Below, one piece after another: positions 7,120-56,593 of a stretch of DNA of 64,000 nt. Made by a program: the position numbers and the translations under genes. Source of the DNA: Paraphysomonas bandaiensis (taxonomy: Eukaryota > Protista > Chrysophyceae). The stretch lies in the NCBI GenBank assembly GCA_965644295.1, contig CBFFRP010000432.1, positions 186,001-250,000 on the forward strand, written 5' to 3'. A model generated the notes under the pieces. That model was given only the letters and a program-made list of their open reading frames with translations. It made no database searches and had not been told where the DNA came from. Within the stretch, counting starts at the first letter, position 1; each line of letters opens with the position of its first letter.

Positions 7120-10100
7120 ATGTCTCATTCCTGGCGTGATTATGAAGAAATTACAGCAAATGTTATCGTAGATGCAGATGATTTGGTCGAAGATTATGAC
7201 GGTCCGTCTTTCTGCAAATGCTCAAGTTTTGAGGACAAGTCTTGCTCCAGTAATGTGTGCTATAATTATGCCACTCTGACAGAGTGCACGAAATGTACCT
7301 CATATTGTGGAAATAATAAATTTCAGAAGAACTTTTCTGTTAATCTCGATGTACGCGAAGCTAGTGATAAGGGTTTTGGGCTATACTGTTTGGAAGATAT
7401 TACGAAAGGCCAGTTTGTTAGGGAATATGTGGGCGAGCTGATCAGCACAAAGGAACTGAATACGAGGTAGTGTCTTATGTGGGTTAGTCTGTATAAGTTA
7501 CATTGTGTATGTCAGACTTCGGACATCTGCGACGGATCATATGTATGTGATGGAACTGAAATCAGGAACATATCTGGATGCCAGGAGGAAGGGATCCGTA
7601 TCCCGTTTCATAAATCACAGCTGTGAACCGAACTGCTCGGTGGAGGTATGGACGGTAGGGCGACGGTTGCGAGTTGGTATTTTTGCAATCAAAGATATCT
7701 CAGCTAACACTGAACTTACTTTTGACTATCGATGGGAACGGAGTGAGCGCCCCCTCACACGGTGAGTCCGAAAATCTGTCACTTCTTGTTATCATGTAGT
7801 CTTTCTTTTTCAGATGTTGCTGTGGTACGAAATCTTGTAGGGGATATCTTGAGGTGCTGAGTGAGGAGGACCTGGATGACCCGACACTGACACTTCGGTC
7901 GGGCTTATGGACGAAAAGTGTGGAGGCTGAGCGACTTGCAGAAGAAAGCGGCAAGGGGGGTGAGTGGTTAGTTGGGCGCCGAATAAAAGTCTGGTGGGAG
8001 GAGAACCAGTCATATTTTGAGGCAGATGTTCTCTCGTATAGTAGTTCCACATTGTTGCATTTTGTAAAGTATCTCACCGACAACGATCGTTCGTATGAGC
8101 GCCTGCTTCCCTGTAGCTCCAGTGATACGGAATGGGAATGGCTTGACGAAGAAAAAAACGATGTGATCATACGTAAACGGAAGGTGGAAGACGATGATGG
8201 GAGTAACACTAGCGCTGAATCCGCGTCAGTTGTAGAGGAAGGAGATGAGAAAGAAAGAGAAGAGAGAGCGTGTGATACCTTTCACTTGTGTGGCCACACT
8301 CAACGTCGTAGAGAGAACAGGAGTAGCTTTGTGTCCGCTGCTGTTGGTACTTCCAGTACCACGATTAAGGTCACCTACGCTGCCTGTGCACACGTACTTT
8401 CAGAATTGAACCAATCAGCAAATCTCCACTATTTTCAACGTTCTCCTGCACAAATTCTGGGAGGCTTTTGCGAATGGGCTTTTATGAAACTTAAAGTTCA
8501 AGTGCGATGTTTGGATGAATCAAAGACAACATATTCAGAGGACGATGTGGTGAGCCTATATTTCCATGGCATGCATGAGACCGTCACAAATTTGTGCAAC
8601 AAGCTCGAGAAAGCTGACGAGTTCTGTAGGTACAGTTCATTTGGATGATCTTAATGACATACAACTGACAAAAGTTAATAGGGCCGAGAAGGTGCGGGCG
8701 GAATCTGAGCGAAAAGCACTGCAAAGGTCTCAGCAGTCTGCCTCAATGACCAACGACTGGCGTTGCTGTCTCCCTAGTGATGTTGTAGAGCAATTGTGCT
8801 GCGCTGCTGGGTGCTCTCTTGACCGAGCAATGGGCTCTATTAAAGGTCTTCTCCCTCACAATTCACTTCCCCTTGTCCCAACCCAGCAAGATATTGGAGT
8901 ACAGCGGTCTATGAGACAGTCCTTATGCTTGCTCCTACAGGAAGTGAAGGCCACGGAGAGAACGTCATTCCACGCACTGACACTGCTTCAGCGATGCTTT
9001 GATGTAATGTCGAGTGCGGATATTACCTCAGATCTAATGGGATTCTTGGCTGCCTGTCTATTATTATCTATAAAATCTGTGGGCGTGTTTCGCCCGTGGC
9101 ACATTTGTCAAATCATTTCATCAGCCTACAAAGTCATTTTCCACCAAGTTTTGGAAGAGTCCGTCCCTGAGAGATACATCCGTCGCACTAGCATCATAGA
9201 GCATCGCATTATGCAAAATTTGCAATGCGACTTGCTGGTACCAGATATATCCTATTTTTGTTTGCCAGTTTCGTTTGACAAAGGTGTAAGTTGCGACGAC
9301 GAGGTGCATGCCATCTTACAAGGCATGTTTGTCCTCTGCAATTGTATATTGCGCGCAGGAGATAGAAATGTGGATGTCACAGGTGAAAGAGTAACGGTTT
9401 CTGACGTATATCGGAGCCTCTGCCCGGATTTGTTGCAATGGAACACTGTGTTCGTGCTTTGCGTTCTCCAGGCTTATCTGATGCATGCTCCTCACCAGCG
9501 CCCTTCTCTAGGTGAAGTAAACTCGGATGTCATAGCTCAAGATACAATGATTCGGCGTTCTGTGATGGAAAATCTTTCCGTATCAAAGACATTTTTACCA
9601 TTGCGCAAAGCATATATTCGATACAGTCGACTATCGGAGCACCAGACGAATAGTGTGGCAATATACTCGCCTTTTGCTTGTGAATGGGCCATGCACATGC
9701 TATGCTTACTCTGTAAAACTGCTCTGAATTCTGAGGAAGTGCATAGTGTCCAGCTTGCCGTTAGTTCAGTATGCAATTCTTTTAGTAGAGATCAGGAAAT
9801 AACGCAGTCAGCTTGGAAAGATTTGTTGACACGAGTACCTTGTGTCCTCTCTCGGTGGTGTAGAGAGATGGGTGGAACTAGCCAAGAGTACGGCCACTTG
9901 GGCCACGACTACCACTACTCTCCTCACCGCCACCCGCGACCACCTACCGCACCACCACCTCCTCCTCCACCCCCTTCTTCTGATGGTTGCACTGCTACGC
10001 CTACTCTCAACAAATTATGTCTCACTGTTCGTGTTCGCCAACCGTATAACATCTCCAGTAATCGCATGCATACGGGGTGGTTGGATTACTCTGACATGCG

Positions 10101-45853: not shown

Positions 45854-45996
45854 GCCTACACTATGGCCACGTCCTCGGAATGGGACACTAGAAATTACAC
45901 CAAATTGACTAGGCCCAATAATGGATACCATTCGTTAATATTAGCATTTAGTATTACTTATTTATTCGAATGAATCCGTGGTACACTTAGGATTTT

Positions 45997-46872
45997 TGTA
46001 ATAACCAGCTATCAGGTTATTCTACTCTACAAGCTCTCTATTGTATATGCTTAAGTTTGTACATACTATCTGTGCAAACATAGATTGAATATTATTATTA
46101 TTACCATAACTCACACTGAGATATATGATGTATTATGACTATGACAATTCATGCTTATTATTGATATTTACATAATCATTCAAAAGACAAAGAGAGACAT
46201 GATTATCAATAATGAGACATAATGATGATACTGATGATGGATGATATATATATATGTTCTTATTATATATATATATTGACTTTAAGGCTGGAGAAGTTTA
46301 CTGGAGAATTCCGGGTTTGATATCCACGCTGATAGATGTGTATTGCCAGATTATCCAGTAATACAGTTATACATTACGTATTTCCTTCAGTGCTTATTGG
46401 GGATTGATTGTACTAAGGAGTACGAATACCAGGCTTCAACTACAAAGAGAATACTGAATGTATCTTCCCTTATACAGTTGTGATGAGTTATTATGATCAA
46501 CTGTGTTAGACTGATGTGTTTGGTATTGAATATGAATGATGTTCATTCCATTGATCACGGAATCGTAGGTAGACATATTTATATTATTGATAATAAGATG
46601 CAATTTCCTTACTCTTGAAATTGCTGGTAGATAGCATTGTAGTTGTAGACATATATTTGTTCATTGTGATTTGATTATATTGTTATTATTATGGAGGAGG
46701 AGACTCTTGATAGCGCACAAGAGTCTACTAAATTCGAGTCAGTGAGAAGGACCCTCAGGCTTATGCTTGGAGGGTTAGACCCTTCCATTGCCAATGCCAG
46801 TGAGGATCAAATCCGGGATATAGGCTTGGCATTTGGGTTGTCTGAGATCGAATCAGAGACGTTGGTGTCTCA
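45997..46872 (+). repeat. 5' LTR
   Basis: TGTAATAACC...GGTGTCTCA; matches 55398-56273 at a constant offset of 9401 with no difference seen by eye. Confidence 0.97.
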
Positions 46873-49800
46873 ATTTTTTAAGGAAATTTCATCTCTCAAT
46901 CAACAAAGTGACGACTTTAGAGAGACAGAAACTCATGAAGCAGACAGTCAAGCAACGACTGTTCCAGAACTGGTGGATCGTCTTAGTAGTCCGGAGGAGG
47001 AACCCTTGTCAGCCCGAAAACCTCTCGCATTCGGTAAGGACGCTATTCAACCATTGAGGGCTCAGGATGATTTTTGTTCATTTGATGCAGATGCGACAGG
47101 AGATAGTCCAGTACATATGGACCCCTTGCCATTCAAGGGACAAAGTAACAGGGAGGATGAGGATAAGGAGTGTCATTACACACCCTTACCTCACGCAGGG
47201 GATGAAGCACACAATGTGCTACATTCCACCTCTGGATTGCAAGGTGTATATAACACCAGCAGACCAGACCAACTAGGTAGAGATGCGGATAGGTGTCAAA
47301 TCTGTCAGCGACTCACAGATCCCAAGCGTCTCACCGCAGGAGGAATATGTTATTATTGCTCGGAAAATCAATGTATCGATTGTAAGGACCAGGTAAATTC
47401 AATGGAAATTCAGGGTGGTCTATGTTATCGATGCCGAGTAAGAAGGGGGATACTCAGATCAAAGAGACCCACCACAGACACATTAGAGAAGTGCATAATA
47501 TTGGGCCATAGAAGATTGCGTCCTCGGCCAGACCTAAACGAGGACACATATATGGAGCATTTGTACCTGGATCGTGGGGCTAGAGACCCTATGGACCTAA
47601 AGATTTCTCTTAACATCCTGCAACAGTACGCAGATCGACGGAGGGTACATACCACCAGATGGTCAAGACAGCGATACACCGCTCATATAGCAGAGCCACT
47701 GCAGCATTGGGAGCAGCAGATTTACATGGCTTGTACAGCTACTGAGGTCACTGATCGTTTACAGGACCACTTTTTTGAGCAAATGAAAATAGCAAGAGAG
47801 AGTTCTGCGGAAGATATTTCTCAGCTTGCCCAACTAGTCTTAAATCGAGGAAACGGCTTGCAATTACCATCAAATGTTCGCGAGTGGTTAAGTAGGCTGA
47901 CAGTTCTTGACAATGTACATGAGTTAGTGGCTGAAGAGCACATTTACGAAACAGCGGAATTGTGTATGGTGCTGAACCAATACCTTGATATAAGAGACAT
48001 GGCTGAAACTATGTGGGAGGAGGCCGATAGCCAACTAATGATGCGCTGCAACCTCCTCAGCAAACAACTCAGTCAGCAAAATAAAAAATTTGGATCTTGG
48101 GAAGAGAGGACCGTTGACTCTGACGATGAGTCATACCACTCCTTCGTCAGCAATGGTAGTCGGGGTTCCTTTGTCAGCAGAGGAAGTCGGTCAGCGGATA
48201 CCAGATCAAGTACATCCCGAGTGTTGAGTTCTAGGGGTTCAAGATCGAATTCCCGTATTTATCCAACTGAAGATGGCAGACTGCTAGACGCACAAGCATT
48301 CGGGTGTCACCTTCAACAAATTGGAGAGCAACACTGGTCACTGCTCTGTAACCAAATGCGATCGTCTAGAGCCATGCGGTTAATGTCTAAAGCATTGCCC
48401 AAAGCTACTCCATGGAGAAGAGAAGTCAAGGAGCCTACTCTCTACATGAAGACTGATGACAAGATGCGTCTAGAGAAAGATCATTCTAATCGATACCCCA
48501 TTGAAAGAGGACTCCGTTTTGCTGTCCAGAAGGCACGTCAGGCCAAGATGGGGCTGAAAGATTTGGTCATACAGACAAAGAATGGTTGGTGTTTTAAGGG
48601 CGGCTTTAAAGAGGAACTGCAACGGTTGTCTTTGAATCGTGTGCCAGAGATATGGGATGACCAGGAGGATAGCCAATTAGCCACTGAATATGAATTTTGG
48701 ATGCGTCGTTGGGTGCATTTCTGCCATTGGGCTATCCGTAATTATTGTCCCGTACAGACCAATGAACAGCGTGCCAAACAGATTGAGGACTGGGCTGCTC
48801 CTGATCTCGCTACGCCTACAGCAGTTATGCAACTATATTATGAACTAAAAGAGGTAGTTGAACATAATACGCCGGATCGCCAGACGGCACAGGTGATGGA
48901 AGAATCTATGCGCCGAGTGGTAGGAAAAGAGCCTGTTTGGGGTAAATCGTTGGTTGCAGCGTACGACAATAAGATCACAAAAATTGAAAGGGCGAAGTCG
49001 ACTGAAAATTGGAGTCTATCATGGGAGGAGGTAGAATCAATCTGGCGAGAGATTCAGGAAGAATTCCAGCAGGGAACGCTGCTATACATTATACGTCCTG
49101 ATGTCCAATCTAGTAAACAACCAGACACAACTAAGGGTGAGGGTGGCTTACGACGACATCACAAAGTTCATGCCGGCATACGCGAGGAACCCAAACCATC
49201 TCTCACACCGATTGAGATTGCGAAGCTTACATGTTCACGATGTGGCCTTCGACATAGTATTAACAACGCTCAATGCCGACGCATCACGAATGGGAAATTT
49301 GACCCACTTGGATTTGTGTCTGAGACACCACGTAACATTGAAAGGAATCGAATATACAATTTTTGGTTGTCCAGATTGAATAAGTATAGCCAACCTTGGT
49401 CTCAGTTGCCTACGGCTCAGAAGGAGGAATTTCAGGCAGCATTTCGGGATTTGACTAGCCGGTGGGATGGAGGGAGTGCTTTGCATACGACATTCATTGG
49501 TGGCGAACGGAAGAAATCTAATTCCATAGCATCAAGTGTTTCTAGTACACCACAAGTACATTGGGCGGATAGTGATGATGACTCTTCTTTCTCTACACTG
49601 GATGACTCTATACCTGCTCACAGTACAGACTCACTTTCCGGTTCACGATCTACTAAGTCAAAATCAAAACCCAAACGAAAGGTTCATGCTGCACAAAAAG
49701 TTCGATACTTAGTGCACACTGTGACACCTAGGGATGAATCTCAAGATACATTATCCATGTTTCGTGTTCTATATGATACAGTTGATGAAACTGGTAAACC

Positions 49801-50761
49801 AGTACAGAGAGTCGGTTGGCACCAGGTGGATCATGGCTCTATGGAGTCCTTGATCGACGAAGAGTGTGCAGCCCTCTTGAATCTTAAGCGAGTACGAATC
49901 CCAAAGAGAGACCGGTACATTATTCGGGGAATAGGTTCACAGGATATCGCTGTGAGTTGGAGAGCTTGTCTTACCTACACTGTTACTGCACAACGGGTCT
50001 TACCTGTGGCAGTGTTGCCGGGAGAGGCACCACTTTTGAACAATGCAAAGGAACCAGTTCAGTTGAAAGCATGGATACCAATTATCCCTAATTGTTCCAT
50101 GAATGTAATCTTTGGAGGTCATGCATTACGACGTATCAAAATGATTGACTTGTTTGATCATAAACTGCTGTTGTTCCAAACTAATGGTATTCAGTATGCA
50201 ATGCCTCAATTCAACTGGAATGAAACTGTTACGCAAATGGCATCAGCTCAGGACCCTGTGGTACAGAAATGTGTTGCACGCCATCTCCGTGAAAACAAAC
50301 CTCAACCTCACAAGGCTGCAGTCTGCATATCGAAACATATCCCACCGCATTCTAAGATGCGGATTCCTGTTCAAGTGGGCAAGGGTGCTCCGTTAGGTGG
50401 ATGGATACAGACTCTGCCAGAGGTTGCAAGGATTAATTCAGGTGATGATGCTAATGAGCCCGTCTTACAATTTGAAGATGCTATTTGTACGGCGAACAGA
50501 CCTTATATATGGGCTTCTAATCATACCGATGATTGGATACATCTACCGGGTAGACCGCGTTTAGTTGTACGACTTCAACCCATATTATTGGGGATGCAGG
50601 TTCATAATCAGGAGACGGTGGAAACTGCTATGAATGGCAGTGTCGAGACGGAGGATACCACTATCATGCCTACTGATGACAAATTCCAGCATTCAGATAT
50701 TTCTATGTTATCTGAAGAGAATCACGAAAATGTCACTAGGCTGGTGTCCTCATCGAAATGA
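46691..50761 (+). CDS. gag: Retrotransposon ORF1: Gag plus aspartic protease-like domain
   Basis: 1356 aa. Four CxxC pairs (47294-47434), knuckle CSRCGLRHSINNAQC (49232-49276), protease-like VDHGSMESLID...IFGGHALRR. Confidence 0.85.
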   Translation: MEEETLDSAQESTKFESVRRTLRLMLGGLDPSIANASEDQIRDIGLAFGLSEIESETLVSQFFKEISSLNQQSDDFRETETHEADSQATTVPELVDRLSSPEEEPLSARKPLAFGKDAIQPLRAQDDFCSFDADATGDSPVHMDPLPFKGQSNREDEDKECHYTPLPHAGDEAHNVLHSTSGLQGVYNTSRPDQLGRDADRCQICQRLTDPKRLTAGGICYYCSENQCIDCKDQVNSMEIQGGLCYRCRVRRGILRSKRPTTDTLEKCIILGHRRLRPRPDLNEDTYMEHLYLDRGARDPMDLKISLNILQQYADRRRVHTTRWSRQRYTAHIAEPLQHWEQQIYMACTATEVTDRLQDHFFEQMKIARESSAEDISQLAQLVLNRGNGLQLPSNVREWLSRLTVLDNVHELVAEEHIYETAELCMVLNQYLDIRDMAETMWEEADSQLMMRCNLLSKQLSQQNKKFGSWEERTVDSDDESYHSFVSNGSRGSFVSRGSRSADTRSSTSRVLSSRGSRSNSRIYPTEDGRLLDAQAFGCHLQQIGEQHWSLLCNQMRSSRAMRLMSKALPKATPWRREVKEPTLYMKTDDKMRLEKDHSNRYPIERGLRFAVQKARQAKMGLKDLVIQTKNGWCFKGGFKEELQRLSLNRVPEIWDDQEDSQLATEYEFWMRRWVHFCHWAIRNYCPVQTNEQRAKQIEDWAAPDLATPTAVMQLYYELKEVVEHNTPDRQTAQVMEESMRRVVGKEPVWGKSLVAAYDNKITKIERAKSTENWSLSWEEVESIWREIQEEFQQGTLLYIIRPDVQSSKQPDTTKGEGGLRRHHKVHAGIREEPKPSLTPIEIAKLTCSRCGLRHSINNAQCRRITNGKFDPLGFVSETPRNIERNRIYNFWLSRLNKYSQPWSQLPTAQKEEFQAAFRDLTSRWDGGSALHTTFIGGERKKSNSIASSVSSTPQVHWADSDDDSSFSTLDDSIPAHSTDSLSGSRSTKSKSKPKRKVHAAQKVRYLVHTVTPRDESQDTLSMFRVLYDTVDETGKPVQRVGWHQVDHGSMESLIDEECAALLNLKRVRIPKRDRYIIRGIGSQDIAVSWRACLTYTVTAQRVLPVAVLPGEAPLLNNAKEPVQLKAWIPIIPNCSMNVIFGGHALRRIKMIDLFDHKLLLFQTNGIQYAMPQFNWNETVTQMASAQDPVVQKCVARHLRENKPQPHKAAVCISKHIPPHSKMRIPVQVGKGAPLGGWIQTLPEVARINSGDDANEPVLQFEDAICTANRPYIWASNHTDDWIHLPGRPRLVVRLQPILLGMQVHNQETVETAMNGSVETEDTTIMPTDDKFQHSDISMLSEENHENVTRLVSSSK

Positions 50762-53700
50762 GTAGACGGCAAAGAGGTGAATCGGCCACCTCCGGAGCCA
50801 CCGCCTGTTAACATAGCCGATACGACTTCGGATTGTCCACGACCGGAGTCATTCCCTGTGGAATTATGGAATTTAGTGGATTTGTGTCAGCGAAATTCAG
50901 TTCAACCACGATTTGACAAGTACACTCCTGACCGTCTTCAAGAGTGTATTGAACTGATTTTAACTAAGCTGGATATATATAAGGATGATGAAGCAGTCTC
51001 GTTGCAAGGGGAGATTTCTATCGACGCGGATACTATAGCTTCACATCATAATGAACGTGATTATTTTTTGGCTCAAGCTTTGGCCAATATTGATGTTTTC
51101 TGTTTTCCTGATCCCGATAACCCTCCACGGATTAAGGATTATAAAGTGAGTATTGAAACTACTGATGAAGTTCCGGTTCGGGCGCGACCTCGGAAATATT
51201 CTTTATTGCAACAAGCATTTTTAGAGGCTAAAACTGGTATGATGCTTCGTCAGAAAAAGCTTCAACCCTCAAACAGTGATTGGAGCCATGGTTTAGTTCT
51301 GGTTCCTTATCATGACCGTATTCAGAAATTTTTAGATAAATGGGGAGACACGGCACATTTAGAAATCTTCAAAAAGGTTAATTGGCCTGAAGTGGCCACA
51401 TTTTTTCGGATGTGTTCAGATGTCCGATCGCTCAATCAGAAAACTAAGGTAGATATTTTTCCACTTCCCAGGATTGATGACTTGCTAGATAGCATTCCTG
51501 TGGGAACTGACCGGTTTTCAGCGGGCGATATTGCTGATGCATTTTTCTGTGTGGAGCTTGACGCTGATAGTCGATTTAAAACGGCATTCCGCACTCATAA
51601 CGCTCATTTACAGTATACGGTGATGTTACAAGGCTGGGTCAATGCACCTTCACACTTTAGTAGAGTCATTGCCCAGACTTTTGAAGACATGGATCGGTTT
51701 CAAGTCTCTGCATACCTGGACGATGTGCTTAACCATACTGGGGGTTTTCGTGCACATTTCCTGACACAGCAGTCCATATACGATAGACTTCGAAATCGTC
51801 ATCTTACATTTAAAATTGAAAAGACTCATATTAATTATCGGGAGCTGCGGTTCCTTGGACATATTCTGTCCAGAAACGGCCGATGCCCTGATCCGAAAAA
51901 GGTTGAGGCGATTACAAATCTTGCAGACCCAGAGGACGTTACGGCTGTTCGATGTTTTTTAGGAAGTACTTCATTCTACCGTCAGTATATTCCTCAATAC
52001 GCAGACGTTGCGTTGCCTCTGTATGACTTGACGAAGAAAAATGTCAACGTGAAGAAACTCTGGCGCCCTGAGATACACGGCCATGCCATGGAGAGGCTTA
52101 AAGAGGCGCTGCGGAAGGCTCCTGTGCTTCGTTACATTGATAATTCTAAACCGTTTGTCATTCACCTGGATGCTTCCAAGACAAAGCGTGGTATCGGTGG
52201 GGTTCTCATGCAGCATGATGACGCAGGGCAGCTCCATCCGGTGGAATATTTCAGTCGTAAGTTAACTCCTGCTGAACGAAATTACTCGGCCACGGATTTG
52301 GAATGTAAGGCCCTCAGGGATGTTATTCTCCATTGGCATATTTATCTGAGTAGTGGTCGTAAATTTGAAGTCCACTCTGACCACAATTGCCTGAAATATA
52401 TGGTCCATTCAGTGACTGCAACACTTAATCCACGATTGCTGGGATACCTCATGGATCTTCAATCATATCGTTTTGCTTTACATTACAAAAAAGGGGTGGA
52501 AAATGTAGTTGCTGATATGTTAAGTCGCCTTTGGCAAATAGGGGATGTACCGCCAGCTACTAGGGAGGAGCTCTCCGATCATCTCGGGCCGGTGGTTGAT
52601 AATGAGGATCCAGACCTCATCCGATCATGGGGGGCTGCAAAACGACAGTTGAGTAAATTGAAACGCCAAGCGGTTGTGGAGGCGCAAACTATTAAGAAAA
52701 CTCATACTTGCTCTAGCAAATTTGAGGTTCAAATCTGTAATTGTGATGCGCTGGATTTGGATTTGTTGTCTTCTTTGACTAATGTCAAGAAAGGGGGAGT
52801 ATTAGGGGAAAGTTCAGAATTAGAAAATTCTGAAGTTAGATTTAAAGTGGCTGGCTCTACATTAAAAAGAAGGAAACAGCCGAGCATCGATGTAGAACAA
52901 TATAGTTGCCAGGTTGAGAATCTACTTAAAGAATTGAATATTACGGAAGTCCAGGAAACTGGTGAGTCAAGGATGAAATTCAGCAATTCGGGACAGAATA
53001 TACAACATGCAACTGCACACTCGAACCGAACTAGCTTTCATCCATCTCGAACAAACTATATGGATAATCCAGATGAGTCAGAAGATATGAAGTTAATTCG
53101 AGAACGACGAATTTCTGGTTACAATCAATGTACTATTCTTCCATCGACAAAGCTAAAAGCAGGATGGGGACTTTTTGCCACCAAACAGATCTGTCCAAAT
53201 GTTGAGATTTGTGATTATGTGGGTCCGGTTGTATCTGAAGGAGTGGATCAATTAAGCTCCAATTATGGGATGCAGATGATTGCTGGAGCACATCGTAAGA
53301 TTGTTATTGATGGATGGGAACCTGGTTCAAGCTTAGGTCGATATGCGAATGATGGGATATCCAAACAATTGATTAATGCGAAGTTGATATGGAAAAAATC
53401 TAAAGGAGTTTTGATGGCTCTTAGAGAGATCTTGCCTGGGGATGAAATATTTTTTGACTATGGTAAAGAATTTTGGAGTACTAGAAGTGATCAACTTAGT
53501 CCAGAAGATAATCAAATTCTGAATTTAGATGGATCTCGACGGAAGACTACCGTGTCTTTTAAAGATGAATTTGAGTTAATTGTGTACGATCAAAAACGGA
53601 AAGTTCAGGAGAAACTATATTCCAAAATCTTTAAGTACAGCGATGAAGAAAATTCCAGAATCCAGGAACTTGTTGAGATGGAGGAACGAAATACTAGGAA

Positions 53701-55342
53701 TTTCGAGAGAACTCTCCGATATCTAGAAACCGACGCTTTGGAGAAGTACTCTTATGAGAACCTAGTACAATGCCAATCACTTGCTGACGAATTGCAATAT
53801 CTGGTAGGCAGAAAGTATATTGATGACGATAATTTCCAAAAATATGAGATTGCTTCAATACATTATGATGAAATGCATAAGTTAGTGGTTGGTCATAGGA
53901 GGCCTTTGTCAGGGAAATTGGATAGATATGATACTCACCCATTCGCCGTATGTGGAGAATCTGGATTATGGGAGTTATCAGATCAATATTTATTAGATCA
54001 TCCGGAAGAAGATCCGGAGATTAAGTGGCCTTCGAGTAGAGAGAGTATGTTTCAGATCCAAGAAAATGATACTCAACTTGGATTGATTATATCACAGTTA
54101 TCAAATTTTGAAACTGGCCATGAGTTAGAAGTGGATGGTCATGTTTACAAGTTACATGAGAATGCAGATGAACCATCGCACAAGACACTATTGAGAAAAC
54201 ATGTTCAGAAAAACAAGGGATCAATAGATTGGCAAATTATGGTCCCTCAGGTGTTACGTTTTCAACTAATGAAGTATTTCCATGAAGGATATACGCATCC
54301 AGGAACACAACGAATGCTTGAAACTTTGAAATTGAGATATTTTTGGCCGTCAATACGCAAGGATGTACAGAAACATGTGGAGGAATGTATACCTTGTAAA
54401 TTACGTAAGACCTATCAAACGCGACCAAAGATTCCAATAATGAAATACCCTGATGCAAAATTTCCTTTGTCACGAATACATATTGATTTAACAGGAAGAT
54501 TGGTGAAAACCAAAAGTGGTTTCAGTTATATTCTAGTGGTAAAGGATTTCCTTACTAAATTTGTTTGGCTTATGCCTCTTAAGAACAAGACGCCTTTGGA
54601 AGTGGCTAATGCTTTGATTACTCATGTGTTTTGTCCATTTGGGTTACCAGAATTACTGGTGAGTGATAAAGGCACAGAGTTTGTCAATAAACTGACCAAA
54701 GCAATATCCAAGTTATTCAAGTATAGAAGGATTAACACTACTCCTTATACTCCAAGGAGTCAGGGTTTAGTTGAGAATCACAACAAGACGTTGAAGGATC
54801 AGTTATACCATTTTGTAGGTGTATTACAGGATGACTGGGATATATTTTTGCCTACAGTACAATTGATGTATAATACTACAGTGTCCTCGAGCACAAGTTT
54901 TACTCCATATTATATGATGTTCGGTAGAGAATGCCGTTTACCATCTATAGAGTTTACATTGTCCTCGAAACTTTCCGAGCTTCGATTACAACCTGGAACT
55001 ATTGAAGCTGAATGGATAGATAAATTGTTGATTTCTTTGGAACAAGCTTGGAATTATGCAACGAAGAAGGCTCAAAAGAATCATCTTCGACATAATATAG
55101 TATCTAGGCGACCTCGAGAGTTCAAAGAATATAATGCTGGTGACTTATTCTTCAGAATTCGACGTCCAATTAATGTGTTTAAATCGGCTGATGATGAGGA
55201 ATTGTATAAAATCAATGCCAAATTACAAGCTAGATTTGAAGGACCTTATAAAGTTATTCGGCGACTAAGTCCAATACTTTATGATGCTGAAATTGAAGGA
55301 AAAGAGGTTCGAATAAATGCTACTAATATGAAGCCATTTTAG
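50762..55342 (+). CDS. pol: Retrotransposon ORF2: RT - RNase H - SET - integrase, in frame with ORF1 after a single TGA
   Basis: RT: FPLPRIDDLL, KTAFRT, YLDD. RH: LDASK...YFSRKL...NVVADMLSR. SET: GWGLFA...RYAND...EIFFDYG. IN: HEGYTHPG...CIPC, HIDL, SDKGTEF, VENHNKTL, FEGPYKV. Confidence 0.97.
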   Translation, partial: VDGKEVNRPPPEPPPVNIADTTSDCPRPESFPVELWNLVDLCQRNSVQPRFDKYTPDRLQECIELILTKLDIYKDDEAVSLQGEISIDADTIASHHNERDYFLAQALANIDVFCFPDPDNPPRIKDYKVSIETTDEVPVRARPRKYSLLQQAFLEAKTGMMLRQKKLQPSNSDWSHGLVLVPYHDRIQKFLDKWGDTAHLEIFKKVNWPEVATFFRMCSDVRSLNQKTKVDIFPLPRIDDLLDSIPVGTDRFSAGDIADAFFCVELDADSRFKTAFRTHNAHLQYTVMLQGWVNAPSHFSRVIAQTFEDMDRFQVSAYLDDVLNHTGGFRAHFLTQQSIYDRLRNRHLTFKIEKTHINYRELRFLGHILSRNGRCPDPKKVEAITNLADPEDVTAVRCFLGSTSFYRQYIPQYADVALPLYDLTKKNVNVKKLWRPEIHGHAMERLKEALRKAPVLRYIDNSKPFVIHLDASKTKRGIGGVLMQHDDAGQLHPVEYFSRKLTPAERNYSATDLECKALRDVILHWHIYLSSGRKFEVHSDHNCLKYMVHSVTATLNPRLLGYLMDLQSYRFALHYKKGVENVVADMLSRLWQIGDVPPATREELSDHLGPVVDNEDPDLIRSWGAAKRQLSKLKRQAVVEAQTIKKTHTCSSKFEVQICNCDALDLDLLSSLTNVKKGGVLGESSELENSEVRFKVAGSTLKRRKQPSIDVEQYSCQVENLLKELNITEVQETGESRMKFSNSGQNIQHATAHSNRTSFHPSRTNYMDNPDESEDMKLIRERRISGYNQCTILPSTKLKAGWGLFATKQICPNVEICDYVGPVVSEGVDQLSSNYGMQMIAGAHRKIVIDGWEPGSSLGRYANDGISKQLINAKLIWKKSKGVLMALREILPGDEIFFDYGKEFWSTRSDQLSPEDNQILNLDGSRRKTTVSFKDEFELIVYDQKRKVQEKLYSKIFKYSDEENSRIQELVEMEERNTRNFERTLRYLETDALEKYSYENLVQCQSLADELQYLVGRKYIDDDNFQKYEIASIHYDEMHKLVVGHRRPLSGKLDRYDTHPFAVCGESGLWELSDQYLLDHPEEDPEIKWPSSRESMFQIQENDTQLGLIISQLSNFETGHELEVDGHVYKLHENADEPSHKTLLRKHVQKNKGSIDWQIMVPQVLRFQLMKYFHEGYTHPGTQRMLETLKLRYFWPSIRKDVQKHVEECIPCKLRKTYQTRPKIPIMKYPDAKFPLSRIHIDLTGRLVKTKSGFSYILVVKDFLTKFVWLMPLKNKTPLEVANALITHVFCPFGLPELLVSDKGTEFVNKLTKAISKLFKYRRINTTPYTPRSQGLVENHNKTLKDQLYHFVGVLQDDWDIFLPTVQLMYNTTVSSSTSFTPYYMMFGRECRLPSIEFTLSSKLSELRLQPGTIEAEWIDKLLISLEQAWNYATKKAQKNHLRHNIVSRRPREFKEYNAGDLFFRIRRPINVFKSADDEELYKINAKLQARFEGPYKVIRRLSPILYDAEIEGKEVRINATNMKPF

Positions 55343-55386
55343 GTTCGCAGTGAACTTCGTTCCGCATACTGGCGTATGCGACTGCT

Positions 55387-55397
55387 GGAGGGGGTAG
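55387..55397 (+). other. Polypurine tract
   Basis: GGAGGGGGTAG immediately 5' of the 3' LTR. Confidence 0.9.
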
Positions 55398-56273
55398 TGT
55401 AATAACCAGCTATCAGGTTATTCTACTCTACAAGCTCTCTATTGTATATGCTTAAGTTTGTACATACTATCTGTGCAAACATAGATTGAATATTATTATT
55501 ATTACCATAACTCACACTGAGATATATGATGTATTATGACTATGACAATTCATGCTTATTATTGATATTTACATAATCATTCAAAAGACAAAGAGAGACA
55601 TGATTATCAATAATGAGACATAATGATGATACTGATGATGGATGATATATATATATGTTCTTATTATATATATATATTGACTTTAAGGCTGGAGAAGTTT
55701 ACTGGAGAATTCCGGGTTTGATATCCACGCTGATAGATGTGTATTGCCAGATTATCCAGTAATACAGTTATACATTACGTATTTCCTTCAGTGCTTATTG
55801 GGGATTGATTGTACTAAGGAGTACGAATACCAGGCTTCAACTACAAAGAGAATACTGAATGTATCTTCCCTTATACAGTTGTGATGAGTTATTATGATCA
55901 ACTGTGTTAGACTGATGTGTTTGGTATTGAATATGAATGATGTTCATTCCATTGATCACGGAATCGTAGGTAGACATATTTATATTATTGATAATAAGAT
56001 GCAATTTCCTTACTCTTGAAATTGCTGGTAGATAGCATTGTAGTTGTAGACATATATTTGTTCATTGTGATTTGATTATATTGTTATTATTATGGAGGAG
56101 GAGACTCTTGATAGCGCACAAGAGTCTACTAAATTCGAGTCAGTGAGAAGGACCCTCAGGCTTATGCTTGGAGGGTTAGACCCTTCCATTGCCAATGCCA
56201 GTGAGGATCAAATCCGGGATATAGGCTTGGCATTTGGGTTGTCTGAGATCGAATCAGAGACGTTGGTGTCTCA
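55398..56273 (+). repeat. 3' LTR (includes a duplicate of the first ~61 gag codons)
   Basis: Matches the 5' LTR and explains the short ORF at 56092-56289. Confidence 0.97.
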
Positions 56274-56593
56274 TTTTACCTCGCCTTAGCTAGTAGGTAG
56301 CAGAGAGCGCAAATGTAAAATATCATTTTGGTTGTGTTTTTTGGTTAATAAAATTTCGTGTTTTTATTCGGTTGAAAGAGCACCTAGATGCAGTCGGGAA
56401 GTTGGAAATAATCGTTTTCCCTGTGGTTGGACTCTGCCCATATAGATATCTCTTTTCGTTCTTCCGCCCCCCTTCCTTGAAATTACTGCAGCTATGTTGC
56501 ATTGGTTAGACCTTACTACAAAGACCTCATTTTGTTCTGTATTGTGAAGCTACGTGAGCATCATTTGCGCCTATCATTATTAAAACTCTATAC

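Follow-up and report, generated by a model that had tools for sequence, protein, structure and literature searches.

A SET domain under purifying selection between RNase H and integrase in a lineage of Ty3/Gypsy retrotransposons

Does a retrotransposon of the chrysophyte Paraphysomonas bandaiensis carry a lysine-methyltransferase domain within its own Pol polyprotein, and what would such a domain do for the element? The question is raised by a 64,000-nucleotide stretch of the genome (GenBank assembly GCA_965644295.1, contig CBFFRP010000432.1, positions 186,001 to 250,000 of the forward strand), hereafter the window, which holds an intact Ty3/Gypsy long terminal repeat (LTR) retrotransposon of 10,277 bp at 45997-56273 on the plus strand. 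A first-pass annotation, made from the letters of the window, had proposed that Pol of this element contains a genuine SET domain between RNase H (RH) and integrase (IN), and both the Pfam match and the predicted fold bear this out. We find that the SET-Gypsy Pol is a real, selected and previously undescribed form of a retrotransposon capturing an epigenetic domain. The explanation that fits best, with a probability that we put at about 0.62, is a real and recently mobile SET-barrel Gypsy lineage whose SET domain acts as an S-adenosylmethionine (SAM)-dependent lysine methyltransferase, likely on histones, to the benefit of the element.

The SET peptide quoted in the first-pass annotation is the translation of 53129-53476 (+) and lies inside a single open frame at 50777-55342. 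In Pfam, SET (PF00856) matches Pol residues 796-896 (53162-53464) over the full length of its profile (positions 1-105 of 105). The E value is 3.7e-7 and the score 31.0 bits, where the curated cut-off is 22.4, and the envelope of a hidden Markov model (HMM) built for the family extends over 53084-53503. Searching the PDB with the single sequence returned the SET domains of EZH2 and EHMT2 at E values of about 1e-5, GWG, Y-x-G and FFDY aligning with the motifs of EZH2. With a profile built from 15 family members, the E values improved to 6e-13 for EZH2 and 1.4e-12 for G9a, followed by MLL, SETD8, SETD2-type enzymes and PRDM12. An AlphaFold (AF2) model was made of Pol residues 770-1160, with a mean predicted local distance difference test score (pLDDT) of 67. 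Foldseek placed its SET part with G9a, MLL1 and SET8 at E values of about 5e-6, and VIA gave Z scores of 9.2 for SETD6, 9.1 for MLL1, 8.8 for SmyD1 and 8.6 for SET7/9, almost all of the top 50 structural matches being SET or PR domains. The profile and structure checks that had been suggested for this region therefore all arrive at SET, be it through Pfam, the PDB profile, Foldseek or VIA, and the Pol insert holds a true SET-fold domain, far beyond chance. The size first given for the insert, ~580 extra codons, was also right: 591 codons separate RNase H from the zinc finger of integrase, and part of this stretch is ordinary linker.

The motifs of the window copy read GWGLFA, DYVG, GRYAND...NAK and EIFFDYGKEFW, and their conservation was read from an alignment of 13 sequences at 30-37% identity. 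Within the SAM-binding motif G-x-G-L-F-A, the second Gly and the L-F pair are invariant across these divergent sequences. The Tyr of Y-x-G is nearly invariant and aligns with the Tyr of the EZH2 segment S-E-Y-C-G, which we take to be the lysine-channel residue Y641, and both the catalytic Tyr and the Trp of E-[IV]-x-x-x-Y-G-x-x-Y-W are invariant. The remaining motif, G-R-[YF]-A-[NQ]-D-P...N-A-K, keeps its Asn, or has Gln in one branch, and its Asp is invariant where canonical SET domains have His. The GxG and E[L/I]xxDY motifs named at the outset thus stand, aligned to those of EZH2, whereas the proposed RxxN(H) motif has to be corrected to N-D. Because ND is fixed across the whole subtype, free-standing viral proteins included, it is not a lesion of the window copy. 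The domain had also been described as compact and free of post-SET cysteines, and on direct reading the Cys-rich post-SET region is indeed absent.

SET is not the only folded unit in the insert, and a second conserved module had gone unseen. According to the 13-sequence alignment, the stretch between RNase H and integrase consists of two conserved modules parted by variable, charged linkers. Linker 1 (52469-53083) is charged and poorly conserved, has no family match and shows a ratio of non-synonymous to synonymous substitution rates (dN/dS) of 0.17-0.24 within the family. Module 2 (53711-54091; Pol residues ~980-1105) follows about 100 residues past SET, is as well conserved as SET (30-40% identity in 15 sequences) and folds into a small five-stranded barrel with flanking helices (AF2 mean pLDDT 84). 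No Pfam family matches it, even at E<=5. Structure searches returned generic SH3-like barrels with VIA against 48,000 PDB chains (best Z 5.9 for CAP-Gly, 4.8 for Tudor and 4.5 for a chromo barrel) and generic small barrels, nothing informative, in the ESM Atlas. A histone-reader function was considered for module 2 and is unsupported, the matches being to generic barrels only. In some copies Pol is broken inside module 2 by a frame change, namely on the P. bandaiensis contig C238 (L009) and on two metagenome contigs from ENA (L029 and L030).

SET and module 2 are both under strong purifying selection, and SET much like integrase. The dN/dS of SET is 0.05 between the metagenomic relatives L031 and L032 (58 synonymous and 18 non-synonymous changes), 0.05 for L022 against L023 and 0.02 for L022 against L025. 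For module 2 it is 0.02-0.13 in the deeper pairs, and for integrase 0.02 in one pair. The insert as a whole is also constrained among the young copies: the window copy compared with that on C238 gives a dN/dS of 0.12 overall, 0.17 and 0.19 for the two linkers and 0.19 for SET, in which the changes number only about six.

The 62.6 Mb of the genome (669 contigs) contain nine copies of the element, with 97-100% identity in the part of Pol that includes SET. The two LTRs of the window copy are 100% identical, and three further full-length copies (on C123, C210 and C191) have 0 mismatches between their own LTRs and 4-bp target duplications of their own, AGTC, AATA and ATAT. Identical LTR pairs and separate target duplications in four full-length copies show that the family transposed very recently. 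The suggestion that SET is maintained in a recently active family is therefore upheld, by identical LTRs, by dN/dS values of 0.02-0.05 and by the presence of the domain in divergent lineages. None of the three findings that had been named as fatal to it (no HMM or structural match, presence in a single copy only, neutral evolution) was made. Decayed relics with many stops, whose reverse transcriptase (RT) is 56-59% identical to that of the window family, lie at C297:800555-801566 and C234:193154-193597, which shows that the genome also contains older, dead relatives.

The same architecture extends well beyond this family. A second family (B), located on C476, C661, C339, C463, C75, C654 and C656, shares 46% RT identity and 36-38% SET identity with the window family, has the order RT-RH-SET-IN and scores 51-53 bits for SET in Pfam (up to 52.6). 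About a dozen more divergent Pols or Pol fragments with the same RT-RH-SET-barrel-IN layout (L031, L032, P0003, P0007, P0010, P0012-P0016 and P0024) were recovered from marine and other metagenomes, by scanning metagenomes and by searching 1.84 billion representative proteins exhaustively. The exhaustive search gave 488 matches; a word-indexed search with the SET region of Pol gave 1, the same element in ENA metagenomes, a count that reflects word and length limits and not rarity. The contigs of the divergent relatives range from 41 to 56% GC, a spread which indicates that several hosts are involved. Hence, the layout defines a whole lineage and is not a one-off capture.

Within the P. bandaiensis genome, a SET match is absent from the more than 80 other Gypsy matches listed (24-26% RT identity), and in the RT tree the SET-bearers all fall on one side of a fully supported branch. 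As this tree sampled one SET-less family only, it is compatible with a single acquisition of SET without proving it. One sub-lineage, which includes L031:1723-9243 (metagenome contig RCNA010000123.1), P0014 and P0016, has a single open reading frame (ORF) of ~2500 amino acids in the order protease-like, EEP, RT, RH, SET, barrel and IN. The Exo_endo_phos domain, an APE-like endonuclease, sits between the protease-like region and RT, and an APE-type nuclease together with an integrase within one LTR-type Pol is unusual. The window element itself recurs across studies, in many metagenomes of marine or seawater origin, and marine metatranscriptomes contain short exact-match contigs, including one of 264 nt over SET and several over integrase, which are weak evidence of its transcription.

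Where the SET came from can be narrowed down in part. The genome also contains a long interspersed nuclear element (LINE) whose SET has the same ND / Y-G-x-x-Y-W signature (three matches, on C143, C146 and C477). It encodes SET, an APE endonuclease and RT, in this order, in a single frame of more than 2300 amino acids (C143 = L027:3042-9998, minus strand). Among the best 150 matches, 109 of the 149 that are not labelled as transposable elements (TEs) belong to this subtype, and so do stand-alone SET proteins of ~150 amino acids on giant-virus-like contigs of IMG/VR, which are low in GC and reach up to ~190 kb. By features, the nearest ESM-Atlas clusters are small Nucleocytoviricota SET proteins (score 0.89), which we regard as a lead only. 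The view that this SET looks more like minimal bacterial or viral SETs than to the host SET gene at 7120 of the window agrees with these look-alikes on giant-virus-like and metagenomic contigs. Chlorella virus vSET is not among the PDB matches listed (all 49 for the single sequence and the best 60 of 151 for the profile); the C-terminal motif presumably resembles that of vSET.

Capture from the host SET gene at ~7120 was considered and rejected. That gene is matched neither by the TE-SET HMM nor in the genome search, in which no non-TE gene at all matched the TE SET at E<=1e-3. It is therefore unlikely that the SET was recently taken from the host. The SET trees (FastTree and IQ-TREE quick) left out the viral stand-alone proteins, and the domain is too short for good resolution. 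The IQ-TREE tree, although poorly resolved, unites all Gypsy SETs and the LINE SET in one 36-tip group with an SH-like approximate likelihood-ratio (SH-aLRT) support of 90. Beyond this group the trees do not settle Gypsy monophyly, the sister group, the relation to the LINE SET, the donor or the number of captures, and the placement of the window SET outside the main Gypsy clade by FastTree was treated as noise. In the comparison of SET and RT phylogenies that had been advised, the SET-bearers fall on one side of the RT tree, and the SET trees give no donor or capture number. Two metagenomic proteins show SET domains in other company: P0040 joins a RickCE-like cysteine-protease domain to a SET of the LINE subtype, and P0038, a multi-methyltransferase giant of 2700 amino acids, combines two SET domains with a PRMT5 arginine methyltransferase and a DOT1-like domain.

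The remainder of the element has the anatomy of a Ty3/Gypsy retrotransposon, with all features on the plus strand. The target-site duplication TTTT ends the 5' flank at 45993-45996 and recurs at 56274-56277 directly after the 3' LTR. The 5' LTR (45997-46872, 876 bp, TG...CA) matches the 3' LTR (55398-56273, 876 bp) exactly in a direct-repeat comparison, and the polypurine tract GGAGGGGGTAG, read directly from the sequence, adjoins the latter at 55387-55397. ORF1 (46691-50761, 1356 amino acids) is Gag-like with a protease-like C-terminal part. It begins inside the LTR, which encodes its ATG and first 61 codons (46691-46872; counterpart in the 3' LTR, 56092-56273). The sequence after the 5' LTR is accordingly coding; it has no TGG start and no obvious tRNA primer-binding site, as judged without a tRNA comparison. 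The Asp_protease match is weak (ORF1 residues ~1045-1087, E 0.004, below cut-off), and related Pols have a homologue of the protease-like region in their N-terminal part. Together, the TG..CA LTRs, the target-site duplication, the polypurine tract and the order protease-RT-RH-IN are those of Ty3/Gypsy, the protease being weakly seen.

A single TGA (50759-50761) parts ORF1 from Pol, both of which are in one frame, and it is kept at the same position in four other copies, which makes read-through the likely way in which Pol is made. The open frame of Pol (50762-55342; listed ORF 50777-55342, 1521 amino acids) runs RT-RH-linker-SET-linker-barrel module-IN. It contains RVT_1 at 51404-51868 (residues 210-364, Pfam E 1.4e-18), RNase H at 52076-52468 (residues 434-564, E 1e-27 for RT_RNaseH and 3.7e-28 for RT_RNaseH_2), and the zinc-binding H2C2 domain and catalytic core rve of integrase at 54242-54754 (Pfam, residues 1156-1212 and 1230-1326). 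An SH3-like integrase C-terminus of the Tf2-1 type at 55205-55285 is weak (E 0.0023, below cut-off), and no Chromo family of Pfam was found in Pol at E<=0.01, at the integrase C-terminus or elsewhere.

If the SET is an enzyme, its use to the element could be as follows. Pol would be made by read-through of the single in-frame TGA after the Gag-protease ORF, and the SET-barrel unit would reach the nucleus within integrase or alongside it. There, SET would work as an active SAM-dependent protein-lysine methyltransferase, with the barrel module as a possible chromatin- or DNA-binding partner. The most likely target would be a histone tail of the nucleosomes at the new insertion or in its surroundings, the alternative being a host or element protein, and the mark might set a chromatin state that favours the element, through escape from silencing or through a safe, tolerated landing site. 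A fuller version of this account is one that we offer tentatively, as possible and no further: that the Gypsy lineage, and independently the LINE of the same host, adopted a minimal giant-virus-like SET which, fused to the barrel, would enter the nucleus with the integration complex and write a histone-lysine mark around the new copy.

Several points weigh against the preferred explanation. All members of the family have N-D in the SAM pocket in place of the canonical N-H, and among PR-type SET domains some of those whose motifs are altered lack activity. The AF2 model is weak in its SET part (pLDDT 30-85; below 50 for model residues 46-89). Within the window family (A), SET has too few changes for a dN/dS test of its own (3.5 synonymous and 2.5 non-synonymous). 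The RNA fold downstream of the TGA is no better than in shuffled sequences (z -0.93), so that no read-through structure is supported, and the RNA evidence is of contigs only, for which DNA carry-over is possible. Activity, SAM binding and substrate of the SET are predictions, and that it travels with integrase is a guess.

The strongest competitor takes the altered pocket at face value: the SET would be catalytically dead and would bind a histone tail or another host protein, thereby tethering the integration complex to it. It would then be a functional analogue of the chromovirus chromodomain, a reader or anchor and not a writer. A position beside integrase suits a targeting role, ND replaces NH in every member, and many PR domains are without activity. 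A likeness to these is marginal, in that the PRDM2_PR model (PF21549) matches the SET of family B with 31.5 bits against a cut-off of 27; other relatives stay below the cut-off and the window copy has no match at E<=0.01. However, the lineage has strictly preserved GxG, the two Tyr residues and the aromatic Y-W of the C-terminal end across deep divergence, beyond the needs of simple binding. The ND subtype also occurs in the stand-alone 150-residue proteins on giant-virus-like contigs, for which an enzyme is the simpler reading. We therefore consider a dead tether unlikely.

An active SET could also work away from chromatin, on Gag, RT or IN of the element itself or on a host restriction or trafficking factor, and so stabilize or regulate the replication complex. 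Several SET enzymes of the same fold methylate non-histone proteins, SETD6 with its substrate RelA being one, and it is SETD6 that heads the structural matches, with SET7/9 and the SMYDs close behind; the SET is moreover made in cis with its possible substrates. In sequence-profile searches, however, the best matches are enzymes of histone H3K27, K9 and K4, and the same SET subtype is found in the LINE, whose proteins are quite unlike those of the Gypsy element. The occurrence of one subtype in both LINE and Gypsy argues for a target common to the two, such as host chromatin, and we regard a substrate outside chromatin as rather improbable. Finally, an artefact or accident, be it a host exon, an assembly chimera or a single-copy passenger in neutral decay, is practically excluded: no support for it was found, even though three copies have Pol broken inside module 2, and it is contradicted by nine copies at different loci, a second family, independent metagenome assemblies of 41-56% GC, the low dN/dS of SET and the lack of any matching non-TE gene in the genome.

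An active writer remains our preferred reading. Transposons are known to read host chromatin through chromodomains, and DNA methyltransferases, demethylases and methyl-DNA binders are among the domains that they have captured. With a histone-type lysine methyltransferase under selection in the Pol of active LTR elements, and its subtype also present in a LINE of the same genome, this epigenetic toolkit would come to include histone writing; were the fuller account true, a transposon would program its own chromatin rather than only reading that of its host. A young, intact, multi-copy family with divergent relatives is suitable material for testing whether an element sets the chromatin state of its own insertion, and the link to small giant-virus SETs is a hint that genes pass between viruses and retroelements in marine protists.

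A full-text literature search yielded no report of a Gypsy Pol that contains a SET. SET methyltransferases have been reported among the chromatin domains fused with TE domains (Grau-Bove et al. 2022, bioRxiv 10.1101/2021.11.30.470311). One of these fusions, Symbiodinium Smic2990 ('SET RVT_1 DnaJ'), is given there with a PRDM-like SET and a LINE-type RT, and on that description it resembles the SET-bearing LINE of this genome. As far as the survey's listed entries go, its SET-TE fusions are gene models at survey level without element anatomy, and none of the listed rows of its table has the order RH-SET-IN. The first-pass remark that no characterised example was known is therefore fair, with the qualification that SET-TE fusion models appear in that survey and that a SET sits in a LINE of the same genome.

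Chromoviruses such as MAGGY and Tf1, which are Ty3/Gypsy elements whose integrase ends in a chromodomain, are a close parallel in design. In both cases a Gypsy Pol recruited a chromatin-related domain beside integrase, presumably to handle host chromatin. The window element differs in having a SET, which is a writer fold, and not a chromodomain, which is a reader, and in placing it N-terminal of integrase, between RH and IN. SETMAR/Metnase is a host gene that captured a mariner transposase. It likewise unites a SET and a transposon enzyme in one protein, but the direction of capture is reversed and the product is not a mobile element. The minimal SETs of giant viruses (vSET-like) and the small metagenomic SETs are as compact as the window SET (~130-150 amino acids), also lack pre- and post-SET zinc clusters, and share with it the [GA][RK][YF]-A-N-D motif and the Y-G-x-x-Y-W ending. 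Those of giant viruses are, however, free-standing genes on large low-GC viral contigs and not parts of a polyprotein. Among the epigenetic domains known to be borne by TEs, chromodomains, DNMT, TET, MBD and DAM have been listed, and SET has not (de Mendoza and colleagues, bioRxiv 10.64898/2026.05.21.726589). The LTR, DIRS and LINE elements of protists that captured DNMT, DAM, TET or MBD represent the same kind of polyprotein capture, recurrent across element classes and with a likely prokaryote- or virus-like source, as for the window SET. Their captured domains act on DNA, whereas that of the window element has the fold of a protein-lysine methyltransferase.

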